This document shows, in pieces, positions 560-63,683 of a stretch of 64,000 nt of DNA; positions within the stretch are counted from its first letter, which is position 1; the number at the start of each line of letters is the position of its first letter. The notes below the pieces were generated by a model. It ran no database searches and had not been told where the DNA came from. It saw only the letters and a list, made by a program, of their open reading frames with translations. Source of the stretch: Salpingoeca rosetta (Eukaryota; Protista; Choanoflagellata). The translations under genes were made by a program, and so were the position numbers. The stretch covers positions 1,345,679-1,409,678 of the forward strand of contig JAWQFM010000016.1 of the NCBI GenBank assembly GCA_033442325.1. The letters are read 5' to 3'.

Positions 560-1151
560 CGGGTGCACCACGGGAGGCGGGCGCATGCGGGTGAAGGGAG
601 CAGCAGTCGCCGCCCTCATCGTTGCACGTGCTTGGATGTTGGTGGTGGTGGTGTGTGTTGTAGGTGTTTTTGTTGCAGGGTGTTTTGGTTGCAGTGTGTG
701 TTGGGTATGTGTGTGTGTATGTCAGCAGCAGCTCCTTTCTGTGTGTCGGCAAGAGCGCCTCTGTGATGTTAACGACGTTGTGGTGTTGTCTTCGAAGAAA
801 CATAGGGAAGAAGAAGAGTGTGCTTGTTGTGTAATTTGGTGTCGTATGTGTGTGCGTGTGTTAGCTTTGTTTGTTGTTCCGTAAGTTGGTTGTTTTGCTT
901 GCGGTTGGTGTCGCATAAGGCTTTTGTGGAACAAGGAGAGTAAAACGCCACTCCACTTTGAAAAGGGCGGTGATGTGTGTGTGTGTGTTCGTCGTATCTC
1001 ACATCACCCAAATTGTTGTGGCAAGGTTCAACACGTCACACACACACACACACACACACACACAACCAAAACAACGCTCCTCACGACTGACTTCAGTGTT
1101 GTTGTAGTTGCTGGCGATTTGCTGTATTTTCACACACATTTCGGCGCCAAT

Positions 1152-4100
1152 ATGGATGTGGTGCGAGCCGTCAAGTCGGCTGTGTTCTACGCCTGCCGCA
1201 AGGTCAAAGGCCTCAAGGGCGTTGTGCTCGACGATGCCATGGTAAGCGCTGAAAAAGGCGGGGGGAGGGGTTGGGAACCACTACGTACTGTGTGCTGCGT
1301 GCTGTGGTTGCAGTATGTGTGGCGTGCGTAGCTTGTGTGCGTGCATGTTTGTGGTGAGTCGTGCAATGGCAATGTCATTGCACACGCTCCAGCACAGTGG
1401 CAACTCCGCAGCCAGTCCTTCCTCTGCCCCTCACGCTGGTGCTCTCTTGCTCAGTTTGATACAGTGTGCATGAGCATGGGGTGGAAGCGGCAGCCCCTGC
1501 AAGAGATGGAGGTGTGTAATCCATCGCAAAGGGGGACTTGCGAGTGGGGAATCGTGTCCAGTTCAAACCTGCAGAGCATGTGTGTGTGTGTGTGTGTGTG
1601 TGTGTGTGTGCTTGGTGCACTCGGTCTGTGCTCTCACTGCGTTTGCTGCGTGCTGACTAACAACCTTGGTTGTTGATATCGATTGTTGGCGTGATGCTCG
1701 GGTTTGGCAGGTGTTCCAGTTGGATCGAGTCTCCTCACAACGAGAGCTGATGCCAGAGGTCGCGTGCATCATGATCCTTCGACCAACGCAGGTGCGTGCG
1801 TGCGTGCGTGTGTGTGTGTGTGTGTGTGTGTGTGTGTGTGTGTGTGTGTGTGTTGGTCATGTGTGTGTGTGCGTTTGTCTTTATGTGTGTAGGTGTCGTG
1901 TGCCACGTGTGCCAAGGACAAGGGTGCACACTTGTGTCAGGTGTGGCTGCTTTGTGGGCTGGACTGAATTTTGTGCATTGTCGCTATTGTTAATAGATCC
2001 TCCAACCCTCATCCATGCACAGGAAAACTTGGACTTCTTGCGCGCAGAGCTGTCAGATCCAAAGTACCGCGAATACAACATCTGTACGTCGTTACCATGT
2101 GTCTCTATCATTCCCCTATCGCACGAGTGAACATCCACACCCGTATTCACCCTCTTTGCCGTTGAAACTTTGTCTTTGTTTTGCTTGTTTGACCTCTAAC
2201 TGCGACCTGCCCCAATCCACTGCTGCTGTTTCACGCAGTCTTCTCCAATGTTGTCACGGAGGATCAGCTGAAGGACCTCGCCATGGCCGATGCACACAAT
2301 CTTGTCAACGAGGTACGCGAGCGCACACGTGTGTATGCGGCTCTGTGTGTGTTGTATTTATGTGTGTGTGTGTGTGTGTGTGTGTGTGTGTGTGTGTGTG
2401 TGTGTGTGTGTGTGTGTTGTCTTTGTGCAGGTGCGACAACAATACCTACGGTGCACGCACTTACTTTTGTGACGCCCCTCTGTCCGCGTGCCAGGTTGAA
2501 GAGCTGTACATTGACTTTTGGCCGCACGACTCGCACCTCTTCACCACCAACACCCTGGGCTGCCTCAGCTCCCGACACATGGTACCTGACTGTGCACGCT
2601 CGCTGTGTGTCTCTGATATGGCTGGGCGTTTGCAGTGGTTCGTGCAGCCATGGAACACATGTGTGGGTGCACGTGAGTGTACGTGTGTTCGTGTGTACGT
2701 GTGTACGTGCATGCGTGTCCTCACTGCATCCACCACATGTGTGTGTGTGTGCGTGTGTGTGCAGATCAAGGGCAGTGCCATGCAGTCGATGACATCGGGG
2801 CTCTACAGCGTCGTGCAGTCCCTCAAGCTCAACCCAGTCATCAGGTGACGCAATCGTGACGTGTACGTATGCGTGCGAGTGTTTGTGTGTATACGTATGC
2901 GTGTGAGTGTGTGTGCGTGTGAGTGTGTGTGTGTGTGTGCATGCATTATCTTACACATTCGAACACACGCCCTCTTACACACACACGCACCCGTCCCCCC
3001 TCCGCCATCTTGACATCGCCTCTGTGCTGCAGGTACCAGGGCGGGTCCAGTGCGTGTGAGGCCGTGGCTCAGCGGTTGAGTGCAATTCTCGGTGGTGGTG
3101 GACGTCCGGACCAGCAATCCGTTGTCCTCATTGTCGACAGGCGCGCAGACCCAATCACCCCGCTCCTCCTGCCCGTGAGTCACAGCGGTGGTGGTGATGG
3201 CTAATGGGTGTTCGCAGTTGTTGTCGTTGTTCTTCGCAGTTGTTGTCGTTGTTCGCGTTGAGCTGGCCCTGACTTGTTGCACTATTTCTTACGCCGCCAT
3301 GGCTTGCATGACACCTTGCACGCCCGTCCTTATGACCAATGCCGCCATCTTCGCAATCGTATCATCACCGCAATGGCTCCATATGGCACTGTCAGTGGAC
3401 GTACGGTGCGATGGTGCACGACTTCTTTGGGCTCGTCAAGAATCAAGTGGACCGCTCCCGTCTCAAGGACAAGCAGCTTGACGAGCCAAACTTCTCTCCA
3501 GCACACGATCACCTCCTCCGCGGCTGCCACAACAGCTTCTTCGCACAGGTACGCCTGCTGCGTGCATGACGCATGGGTGTGATGCGTGTTGCTTCCACTG
3601 CTCATCTTGGCTGCACGCCCCTCTATTCAACACAACAACGCACCCCTCACACACTGTATGCAACATGCGTGAATGCGTTTGTGTGATTGTGTGGCGTGAA
3701 TACGTGTGTGTGTGTGTGTGTGTGTGTGTGTGTGTGTGTGTGTGTGTGTGTGTGTGTGTGAGTGCAGCTATTTGACTCAGCCAAGCGGTTTGCAAAGATT
3801 GTCGATGAATACCAGCAGCTCAATGATCGCATCAAGACTCTCAGCCTTCAAGATATGGCGGTGTGTGTGTATGTGTGTGTGTGTGTGTGCGGACATGCGT
3901 GTCATGCCTTCAACCCCGCGCCATTGCAACAGAACTTCACGCACCACGAATACCCCCTACACAATATAATCCGCTGCATCTGTGCTGCTGGTGTTGGGTA
4001 TCAGGGGCTGGTGAACGAGCTGCCGAAGCTGAAGGCCCAACGTGACGTCGCCGCACTGGTGAGAACACATGCACACACACACACATACACACACACACAC

Positions 4101-62800: not shown

Positions 62801-63683
62801 GCTCAGCATGAACCAGGCCCACACCTTCTTTGTGACGAAGCACGGCAAATACACGCACCAGACGGTCGAGTTTCGTGTTGCTGATGACGTCATCACCGTC
62901 ACCACCTTCCACTCCACCCGCTCCATCTTGCACAAGAGCAGAAGGGTGCGTGCGCGTGTTTCTCTGTGTGTGTTGGGGGGATCTCTGACTGTGTTTCTGT
63001 GTGCGTGTGTGTGTGGGTGGGTGTGGGTGTGTGTGGGTGTGTGTGGGTCTGTCCGTCTGCCTGCCTGTCTGTCTGTCTGTCCCTGTCTCTGTGGGTCTGT
63101 GTCGCATGCTTGCAGTTGGTTGCGCGTGCATTCCTTTCCACACGCTCTTACGTGCTCTTACATGCGCTTGCTCCCCTCCCCACCACCAACCCTCTGTGCC
63201 CTCCCCATACTTTCACTCCTGTTGCTGCTGCTGCTGCTGCTGGTGTTGCAGTTTGAGATTCCCATGGAGTCAGTTGTGGACTGCCATATCGACGCGCGTC
63301 GCACCACGCGCTTTCACATCGTCTTCCGCCACCCGCCAGACTGGAAGGAGCAGATGTACGAGGCAAAGACCGCCGAACAAGCAGGTGTGTGTGTGTGTTT
63401 GTGTGTGTGTGTGTGTGTGTGTGTGTGTGTGTGTGTGTGTGTGTGTGTGTGTGTGTGTGTGTGTGTGTGTGTGTGTGTGTGAGGGCGTTTAAGCCGAATG
63501 GTGTCGTGTGGCGGTATTGTGACATGATCTCAACTGGGACCCGTTATTCCCCCTCACGCTCATTCACACATTCACGCACACACACACACAGCTGACATTG
63601 TGAACAAGATCAGAGGCATTTTATCTTTTCAAATGGGCGGGAAGAATTCAGAGCTTCGTGCGCAATACAACATGCGCAAGTGA
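59805..63683 (+). CDS. MAPKAP1: TORC2 subunit SIN1/Avo1 (N-terminal domain, CRIM, RBD, PH), multi-exon
   Basis: DTDDSGTC; [18 protein letters not shown]...[19 protein letters not shown]...LGFDSLCL; [22 protein letters not shown]; PH end YEA...[12 protein letters not shown]. Confidence 0.92.

Follow-up and report, generated by a model that had tools for sequence, protein, structure and literature searches.

The question raised by this locus is what arranges the GT and CA dinucleotide repeats around the exons of Salpingoeca rosetta, and whether the two complementary repeats pair across the introns that carry them. The window analyzed, a 64,000-nt stretch of S. rosetta DNA, contains 193 tracts of the GT or CA type, each 10 bp or longer and together occupying 10.6% of its bases, and nearly no dinucleotide repeats of other types. 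Each tract listed in a sequence-only reading of the window was found where that reading had placed it. With 200 kb of contig C1 added as an independent sample, the total amounts to 264 kb of 55 Mb, from which 210 introns were pooled. Their splice sites, apart from those of one annotated gene (Trp), were self-modeled throughout by an EM splice model with a possible bias toward GTGYGT donors, and introns across assembly gaps were excluded from every count.

The strand of coding blocks scoring at least 10 agreed with the NCBI gene strand in all 18 comparisons (18/18), and approximately 3 of the 17 introns modeled in the annotated stretch lay outside the CDS ranges. In protein word searches, the trifunctional Trp gene alone returned an NCBI protein (P0121), and its three modeled introns sum to 768 nt, exactly the annotated range minus the CDS. 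ORF 10422-13028 gave no match in the protein word search, the search with a WD40 ORF was swamped by WD40 proteins, and the P0122 match was dropped for the lineage test, being on another organism's compact, intron-poor contig. The donors of the Trp gene are GTGTGT, GTGCGT, and GTGTGC, and its introns, with further introns and tracts of the window, are as follows.

36878..37105, + strand: intron 1 of the Trp gene (tblastn of the NCBI protein, sequence, and model); donor GTGTGT, (TG)39 at 36904-36981, 26 nt past the donor, and no CA tract
37451..37749, + strand: intron 2 of the Trp gene (tblastn of the NCBI protein, sequence, and model); donor GTGCGT, approximately 170 nt of degenerate GT-rich repeat in the 5' part, a C/T-rich 3' end, and no CA tract
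38105..38345, + strand: intron 3 of the Trp gene, with both tract types (tblastn of the NCBI protein and sequence); the GT-rich 5' part consists of 38120-38138 and degenerate flanks, and (CA)40 at 38214-38293 ends 58 nt short of the acceptor
14395..14482, + strand: (CA)44, ending 36 nt short of the likely acceptor 14518
14719..14915, + strand: intron with donor GTAAGG and (TG)39 at 14731-14809, 12 nt past the donor (model and sequence)
61124..61443, + strand: intron with GT tracts at 61140-61299, from 16 nt past the donor (model and sequence)
39696..39779, - strand: 84-nt intron of an annotated sulfotransferase gene, nearly all sense GU tract from the donor on (CA on the + strand at 39725-39780; model and sequence)
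26829..26923, - strand: sense GU tract (CA on the + strand) in the annotated gene 26639-29008, directly downstream, in the sense direction, of coding block 26939-27061

A donor-side tract was defined as one starting within 60 nt after the donor, and an acceptor-side tract as one ending within 60 nt before the acceptor. Among all 210 introns, sense GT prevailed on the donor side (67 GT versus 7 CA; binomial p = 2e-13) and sense CA on the acceptor side (37 CA versus 9 GT; p = 4e-5). When each sample was taken alone, the donor-side GT:CA counts were 26:2 in the window and 34:5 in C1; the acceptor-side CA:GT counts were 22:2 in C1 and 7:5, which is not significant, in the window. In a metaplot free of any splice model, sense CA and sense GT made up 5.6-10.3% and 0.4-2.5%, respectively, of the bases in the 90 nt upstream of coding blocks, and 2.2-3.2% and 8.6-15.6%, respectively, of those downstream. 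The downstream GT excess was clear in both the window and C1, and the upstream CA excess was clear in C1 and weaker in the window. Within high-confidence introns, 88% of GT midpoints fell in the 5' half and 63% of CA midpoints in the 3' half. The fractional intron position differed between GT and CA tracts (Mann-Whitney p = 8e-16); this test and the donor-side binomial test ruled out chance, and neutral microsatellites placed and oriented at random relative to transcripts do not describe the tracts. Approximately 70% of introns carry a GT or CA tract, and approximately 30% carry neither. The transcript-polarized layout described by the sequence-only reading is supported at exon boundaries in both samples, the window and the 200 kb from a second contig. 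The exceptions which that reading had pointed out are genuine:

3549..3767, + strand: intron in which (GT)28 at 3704-3760 ends 7 nt short of the acceptor at 3767 (GAGTGCAG)
2561..2761, + strand: intron in which GT tracts at 2683-2761 reach the acceptor (GTGTGCAG)
4059..4248, + strand: intron in which a CA tract (4072-4143) begins 13 nt past the modeled donor; the flanking coding blocks are low-scoring

The repeats had also been said to flip their orientation with the gene strand. This description was corrected, as the + strand reads CA, exon, GT whichever strand a gene lies on; that is, the layout is reverse-complement symmetric. Such symmetry is consistent with a DNA-level process acting symmetrically about coding blocks, e.g., a chromatin-tied mutation or slippage bias, which would place GT on the strand running 5' to 3' away from the exon and would involve no RNA function. 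The recurrence of the same GT...CA order past stop codons and in the spacers between genes fits this process, as do the similar lengths of favored and disfavored tracts: the favored orientation was not significantly longer, and there was no sign of length selection. However, donor polarity (approximately 10:1) exceeds acceptor polarity (approximately 4:1), following the gene strand, GT tracts are in register with the donor hexamer, and no process is known to us by which dinucleotide repeats would be oriented relative to exons; a DNA-level origin is thus considered very unlikely. Since the orientation switches over 100-300 bp inside a single transcription unit, a mutation bias coupled to transcription or replication, which would be uniform across the unit, should not be able to explain it either. 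A preferred GT-tract offset of 23-27 nt from the donor was rejected, as degenerate GT-rich sequence fills that space.

Hairpin-assisted splicing, in which the 5' GU array would pair with the 3' AC array of its own intron and thereby unite the splice sites, had been proposed as the mirror image of the teleost (AC)m-(GT)n introns. The four introns named in this proposal each contain both tract types; these are intron 3 of the Trp gene and the following three.

13049..13340, + strand: intron with donor at 13043 or 13049, (GT)38 at 13047-13123, CA tracts at 13192-13231, and a (CTCA)n array to 13299 (model and sequence)
8553..8740, - strand: intron in which sense GU adjoins the donor (CA on the + strand at 8668-8732) and sense CA corresponds to GT on the + strand at 8593-8633 (model, fold, and sequence)
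40317..40609, - strand: intron of the annotated sulfotransferase gene (model, annotation, and fold)

For all four, in silico folding gives GU:AC stems (z -3.0 to -4.3, 17-27 tract bases paired); in the predicted fold of Trp intron 3, 18 GU-tract bases pair with CA-tract bases (z -4.2). Furthermore, GT came first in 24 of the 30 introns with both types, and in 6 of 6 in the high-confidence set. However, both types occurred together in just 7-14% of introns, and no excess of co-occurrence was found, an outcome that the sequence-only reading had itself set against pairing. The 30 observed introns compare with 45.1 expected from length bins or 41.8 from tract-subtracted length bins (p 5e-7 to 2e-4), and the 6 high-confidence introns with 10.8-12.9 expected. 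The lengths of GT and CA tracts showed no positive correlation in introns with both types, contrary to the length matching for which a check had been suggested. When the first 70 and last 70 nt of 120 introns were paired, an intron's own ends paired worse than swapped ends (-34.0 versus -35.9 kcal/mol, p = 0.004), and tracts on either side of an exon were independent (OR 0.84-0.93). In addition, the predicted folds of 38105-38345 and 8553-8740 bury the donor in the stem, and a donor so buried usually hinders U1. The order of the repeats is opposite to that of the teleost class, whose defining co-occurrence is absent here. Because GT and CA co-occur in deficit, the hairpin as a general rule is already refuted, and hairpin-assisted splicing as a working principle appears extremely improbable.

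Long tracts also coincide with gaps in the assembly: 2 of the 3 gaps in the window begin within a tract (5867 and 15265), and 5 of the 10 gaps in the 264 kb adjoin one. Introns with long paired tracts may therefore be under-sampled. The tracts at the two gaps of the window are the following.

5776..5866, no strand assigned: (CA)n-CATG-(TG)n junction running into the gap 5867-6126, possibly an assembly artifact
15158..15264, + strand: CA tract of 107 nt (approximately 54 units) running into the gap 15265-15364, with a likely acceptor CCAG just past the gap

Teleost and lamprey introns of the (AC)m-(GT)n class have their AC repeat at the 5' splice site and their GT repeat at the 3' splice site; the repeats co-occur across the intron above expectation, with pairing as the mechanism, and the class, spliced independently of U2AF2, makes up 0.09-2.3% of introns, many of which lack a pyrimidine tract (Lin, Taggart et al., Genome Res 2016, PMC4691745). 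The introns of S. rosetta resemble this class in having complementary repeats at opposite ends and in including introns without a pyrimidine run (18 of 148). On the other hand, their order is reversed, with GT at the donor and CA at the acceptor, their co-occurrence lies below rather than above expectation, a bridging stem is predicted only for the minority of introns with both types, and a tract is carried by far more of the introns than in fish. No paper describing polar GT/CA intron repeats in choanoflagellates was found in a literature search, which is no proof of absence.

The composition of the introns is polar even where there is no tract: G and U are abundant in the 5' part, and the 3' part is rich in C and poor in G. 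In tract-free and tract-masked introns, keto skew ranged from +0.1 to +0.4 downstream of donors and from -0.1 to -0.35 upstream of acceptors, and the 3' part, outside the 20 nt adjoining the acceptor, contained 35-46% C and 10-19% G. This general asymmetry was found in 16 tract-free introns as well as in masked sequence. Base asymmetry in short introns is known to arise through selection against spurious splice signals, e.g., at the Drosophila pyrimidine tract (PMC10946897). The G-poor 3' part and the G/T-rich 5' part of S. rosetta introns, including those free of repeats, are similar to this case; unlike it, the skew is largely carried by long microsatellites, and a C/A-rich 3' part is as frequent as a pyrimidine-rich one.

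Among 170 donor hexamers, GTGTGT (23) and GTGCGT (18) were the commonest, and GTAAGT occurred 3 times. With GUGUGU and GUGCGU as the commonest donors, a tract of sense GU amounts to a tandem array of donor-like units; such tracts often begin at or near the donor, and their degenerate forms include GTGCGT/ACGCAC. The 5' end of S. rosetta U1 and the U6 ACAGAGA box are canonical, and GUGUGU retains +1, +2, +5, and +6 for U1 and UGU for U6. Compensation for weak donors by GT tracts was rejected: donors followed by GT tracts were not weaker than others (5.22 versus 4.84 U1 matches of 9, p = 0.08). At the other end, a CA tract lies no more than 25 nt from the acceptor in 18 of 148 introns (approximately 12%); in these, T accounts for 7% and the longest pyrimidine run is 2.7 nt.

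We favor, with moderate confidence, the explanation that GT and CA microsatellites and their degenerate forms, unusually abundant in S. rosetta, have been sorted in orientation by single-strand, RNA-level constraints on introns, without pairing with each other. GU arrays would grow from the donor or be tolerated beside it, where they may supply extra U1/U6 contacts or landing sites for proteins, and selection would act against them close to the 3' end, as they would bring extra G and decoy donors there. CA arrays, having no G, AG, or GU, would suit the region between branch and acceptor and may occupy the place of the pyrimidine tract in approximately one-eighth of introns. The two types of tract would act independently of each other. 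Of 80 high-confidence introns, 22 carry a sense GU tract measuring 24 nt or more, in principle long enough for the pUG-fold quadruplexes of (GU)12 or longer RNA (PMC12962679), although this is a resemblance only.

The same tracts might instead be read by proteins as a two-part intron/exon code, in which a UG-repeat binder (TDP-43- or CELF-like) would mark the 5' end and a CA-repeat binder (hnRNP L- or PTB-like) the 3' end, the latter replacing U2AF at introns without a pyrimidine tract. In animals, TDP-43 and CELF act on UG and hnRNP L on CA in intronic splicing elements, which are scattered regulators of single exons. The sense GU and CA tracts near splice sites of S. rosetta are similar to these elements, and the genome contains a match to the TDP-43 N-terminal domain at C10:1830616 (69.6 bits versus a cut-off of 27.1), and exons matching the hnRNP-L/PTB family occur at two loci. 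The strong polarity of sense-oriented repeats near splice sites also fits such a code, as do the coverage peaks of the favored orientation (15-17%, by a rough estimate about twice the noncoding average) and the introns in which CA runs up to the acceptor with no pyrimidine run. Unlike the animal elements, however, the tracts occur in most introns with a fixed polarity. Moreover, the tract-free introns show an equal compositional polarity, no RRMs were found beside the TDP-43_N match in four neighboring ORFs scanned, the hnRNP-L/PTB matches lie under the family cut-off exon by exon with L and PTB not separable, and a U2AF65-like locus is present. A protein-read code is accordingly possible but unlikely. 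It is likewise doubtful, though conceivable, that tandem GUGYGU arrays serve as multi-site pads for U1/U6 or a TDP-43-like protein, that CA arrays replace the pyrimidine tract and recruit a CA-binder rather than U2AF, and that GU is reused after stops for 3'-end formation.

Outside introns, GT had been reported to follow stop codons and CA to precede start codons, on the basis of examples that include the following.

38905..38962, + strand: GT tract 15 nt past the annotated Trp gene stop 38888-38890
13834..13907, + strand: GT-rich tract 40 nt past the stop 13792-13794 (sequence)
58134..58236, + strand: (CA)51, ending 25 nt upstream of the likely start codon 58261
59299-59415, + strand: GT-rich tracts on the stop side of the spacer that holds the (CA)85 below
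59552..59722, + strand: (CA)85 in the spacer that runs from the stop 59222-59224 to the likely ATG 59806

The former claim was borne out in a small sample, in that 4 of 7 NCBI-annotated stops have a sense-GT tract 10-70 nt downstream and 0 of 7 have a sense-CA tract within 100 nt. The latter is weak, with three examples in its favor and just 1 of 5 annotated starts having a sense-CA tract within 200 nt. The GT...CA order is present in intergenic spacers. A modeled intron at 13788-14355 was discarded as false, as it crosses a gene boundary. A test of terminal exons by strand switches gave few cases and was confounded by unmodeled terminal introns. Neither the GT next to stops nor the spacer order is predicted by an account restricted to splicing.

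S. rosetta is the main experimental model for animal origins, and transgenes and genome edits in this organism need correct splicing. Its usual donor is GUGYGU, not GURAGU, and most of its introns, approximately 70%, carry an orientation-sorted GT/CA array. Knowledge of the tracts and the donor is needed for designing introns, predicting genes, and assembling short reads in S. rosetta, the last because half of the gaps seen sit at tracts. The introns of S. rosetta also form a natural contrast to the AC-GT introns of fish, having the equal repeat pair in the opposite order and no pairing. Because a polar layout exists in S. rosetta without pairing, polar repeats alone are not evidence for RNA bridging.

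The analysis covered 264 kb of the 55.4-Mb assembly (55 Mb), namely the window (G000:C16:1345679-1409678) and an independent 200-kb sample of a second contig (C1:500001-700000). Coding blocks were called in six frames using a self-trained codon model after masking of the tracts, and introns were modelled between adjacent same-strand blocks on the basis of frame compatibility and a short splice-site matrix learnt by EM. All introns were self-modelled except those of the Trp gene (P0121), which is named 'trifunctional protein with glutamine amidotransferase [Salpingoeca rosetta]' at NCBI. 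The P0121 locus of GCA_000188695.1 (L022) matched the window base for base, its position 1 corresponding to window position 25402, and this mapping provided the NCBI CDS ranges and strands of seven genes at 25402-48890, whose start and stop codons were confirmed in the window sequence. Blocks scoring at least 10 within the annotated CDS ranges were all on the annotated strand (18/18), and the modelled introns of the Trp gene (228 + 299 + 241 = 768 nt) were exactly equal to its annotated range minus the CDS. In the annotated stretch, 3 of 17 modelled introns fell outside the CDS ranges, indicating that about a fifth of the intron models are wrong. The modelled introns 13788-14355 and 59221-59727 are false because both span gene boundaries, which had been correctly placed by the earlier sequence-only reading.

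The window contained 193 GT- or CA-type tracts 10 bp or longer, which occupied 10.6% of its bases (7.1% in the C1 sample), and other dinucleotide repeats were almost missing from the window. All of the tracts listed in the sequence-only reading were present at the coordinates it gave. Five of the 10 assembly gaps in the 264 kb abutted a tract; tract lengths at gaps are lower bounds, candidate introns across gaps were left out of all counts, and the gaps bias the intron sample against long tracts.

Gaps and perfect or near-perfect trinucleotide arrays in the window
5867-6126: gap, starting within a (TG)n run joined to the preceding (CA)n run by CATG
6960-7059: gap, in unique sequence
15265-15364: gap, starting within a 107-nt CA tract
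6194-6353: (TTG)52, overlapping or abutting minus-strand coding blocks
32543-32618: (TCA)25, overlapping or abutting minus-strand coding blocks
34624-34758: (TGT)45, overlapping or abutting minus-strand coding blocks

The (CA)n-CATG-(TG)n junction at 5776-5866, a perfect palindrome immediately before the gap at 5867-6126, may be an assembly artefact. A 497-bp unit (1.9 copies, 99% identity) with a 171-bp CA-rich tract in each copy at 9795-10754 has either arisen by tandem duplication in the recent past or is an artefact of assembly, and a 134-bp unit (2.1 copies, 98% identity) at 22706-22992 combines GT runs with GAGT/GAGA runs. The three long trinucleotide arrays imply long homopolymeric amino-acid runs; (TGT)45 falls in the WD40-channel gene, within its annotated CDS range.

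Within 90 nt of coding blocks, scored without the splice model, sense CA covered 5.6-10.3% of the upstream side compared with 0.4-2.5% for sense GT, and sense GT covered 8.6-15.6% of the downstream side compared with 2.2-3.2% for sense CA. The window and C1 both showed a clear downstream GT excess; the upstream CA excess was clear in C1 and weaker in the window. About 70% of introns contained at least one tract, and the median fractional positions of GT and CA midpoints were 0.30 and 0.63, respectively (p = 8e-16); in the high-confidence set of the 210 pooled introns, 88% of GT tracts were in the 5' half. Among all modelled introns, 67 GT and 7 CA tracts started within 60 nt after a donor (26:2 in the window alone, 34:5 in C1 alone), and 37 CA and 9 GT tracts ended within 60 nt before an acceptor (22:2 in C1 alone, only 7:5 in the window alone). 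These counts bear out the transcript polarity proposed for splice sites by the sequence-only reading. The exceptions it had noted are also real: (GT)28 stops 7 nt short of the acceptor at 3767, and the acceptor at 2761 is reached by GT tracts. On the + strand, the layout is identical for genes of both strands, with CA left of the coding block and GT right, and is its own reverse complement, a symmetry that had been missed. A literature search found no description of this GT/CA intron layout in choanoflagellates.

Pairing of 5' GU with 3' AC had been suggested to assist splicing. Four introns named as carrying both tract types, 13043(13049)-13340 (+), 38105-38345 (+), 8553-8740 (−) and 40317-40609 (−), folded in silico into GU:AC stems (z −3.0 to −4.3), and the donor itself was buried in the predicted stem in 38105-38345 and 8553-8740. 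GT and CA occurred in the same intron in 30 of the 210 cases, compared with 45.1 expected in length bins (p = 5e-7) and 41.8 in tract-subtracted length bins (p = 2e-4), and in 6 of the high-confidence set, compared with 12.9 or 10.8 expected. Tract lengths in introns with both types were not correlated, and 5'-half GTGT and 3'-half CACA densities showed a weak negative correlation (rho −0.12 to −0.18). For the first 70 nt of an intron, the best predicted duplex with the last 70 nt of the same intron was weaker than with the 3' ends of other introns (−34.0 versus −35.9 kcal/mol, p = 0.004), and the mean over swapped partners was beaten in only 38% of introns. CA upstream and GT downstream of an exon occurred independently of each other (OR 0.84-0.93). 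It is therefore apparent from the co-occurrence deficit, the uncorrelated lengths, the weaker own-end duplexes and the independence across exons that hairpin pairing is not the working principle of these introns. GU:AC pairing may be incidental in the 7-14% of introns with both types. In zebrafish, the class of AC-GT introns is defined by the presence of both repeats in one intron, with AC downstream of the 5' splice site and GT upstream of the 3' splice site (PMC4691745); in contrast, the order in S. rosetta is opposite (GT 5', CA 3') and co-occurrence is below that expected.

The claim that GT also follows stop codons is plausible on small numbers, whereas the claim that CA precedes start codons is weak. 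A sense-GT tract was found 10-70 nt downstream of 4 of 7 annotated stops, and sense CA within 100 nt of none (0/7); at the remaining three, the neighbouring gene is convergent and the spacer is filled by its GT tract. Two tandem-gene spacers were ordered stop, GT, CA, start. GT after stops is not explained by splicing, and GU-rich 3'-end elements are one possible account of it. Only 1 of 5 annotated starts had a sense-CA tract within 200 nt, and among the three start examples put forward, one CA array lay downstream of a promoter-like motif and before the ATG, and a second lay upstream of that motif. Two neighbouring + strand genes (likely ATGs 58261 and 59806) share the upstream motif AATTGGCC..CAT(T)TGC..TTTTCC(C)AAC at 58081-58116 and 59738-59773, which could reflect either a promoter element common to both genes or a local duplication; no other copy of the full motif was seen in the 264 kb.

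The donor consensus of the EM model was AG/GTG[C/T]GT. GTGTGT (23/170) and GTGCGT (18/170) were the commonest donor hexamers, GTAAGT was rare (3/170), and the annotated Trp gene uses GTGTGT, GTGCGT and GTGTGC. Donor-like GTGTGT/GTGCGT units make up the 5' parts of introns, in arrays that are often continuous with the donor. Both the 5' end of U1 (AUACUUACCUG) and the U6 ACAGAGA box are canonical, and by established pairing rules GUGUGU retains the U1 contacts at +1, +2, +5 and +6 and the U6-pairing UGU. The sole U6 match (L029, G000:C9:815095-815166) covers model positions 1-68 of 105, with the remainder after extra sequence. CA tracts, which include ACGCAC variants complementary to GTGCGT, stop at a median of 54-58 nt upstream of the acceptor, and some reach it directly; in 18 of 148 introns, CA was within 25 nt of the acceptor, with 7% T and no pyrimidine run. 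The 3' part of intron 13049-13340 contains a (CTCA)n array (13233-13299) whose units each resemble a yUnAy branch-site core. G runs of 8-14 occur in introns and spacers (36887-36894, 62436-62447, 14016-14027 and 6169-6182), several of them just after donors. A protein-read code of GU/CA arrays is possible, given a TDP-43 N-terminal domain match above the cut-off, hnRNP-L/PTB-family exon matches at two loci and a U2AF65-like locus in the genome; however, RRMs were not found beside the TDP-43 match in the four adjoining ORFs scanned.

The asymmetry persisted after masking of all tracts and in 16 tract-free high-confidence introns. In both cases, the first 100 nt were G/T-rich with 11-19% A, and the 3' 100 nt, with the 20 nt nearest the acceptor set aside, contained 35-46% C and 10-19% G. 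The microsatellites represent the extreme form of a compositional rule that holds for introns in general. Tract orientation flips inside single short introns, which a mutation bias coupled to the direction of transcription or replication could not produce, since it would be uniform across the unit. GT and CA are equivalent for any property of the duplex, such as Z-DNA or nucleosome exclusion. A process that acts on DNA symmetrically about coding blocks is an improbable source of the layout, and it leaves the stronger polarity of the donor side over the acceptor side unexplained. The economical reading of the polarity is a one-strand process, most simply acting on pre-mRNA, which would sort the orientation of GT and CA.
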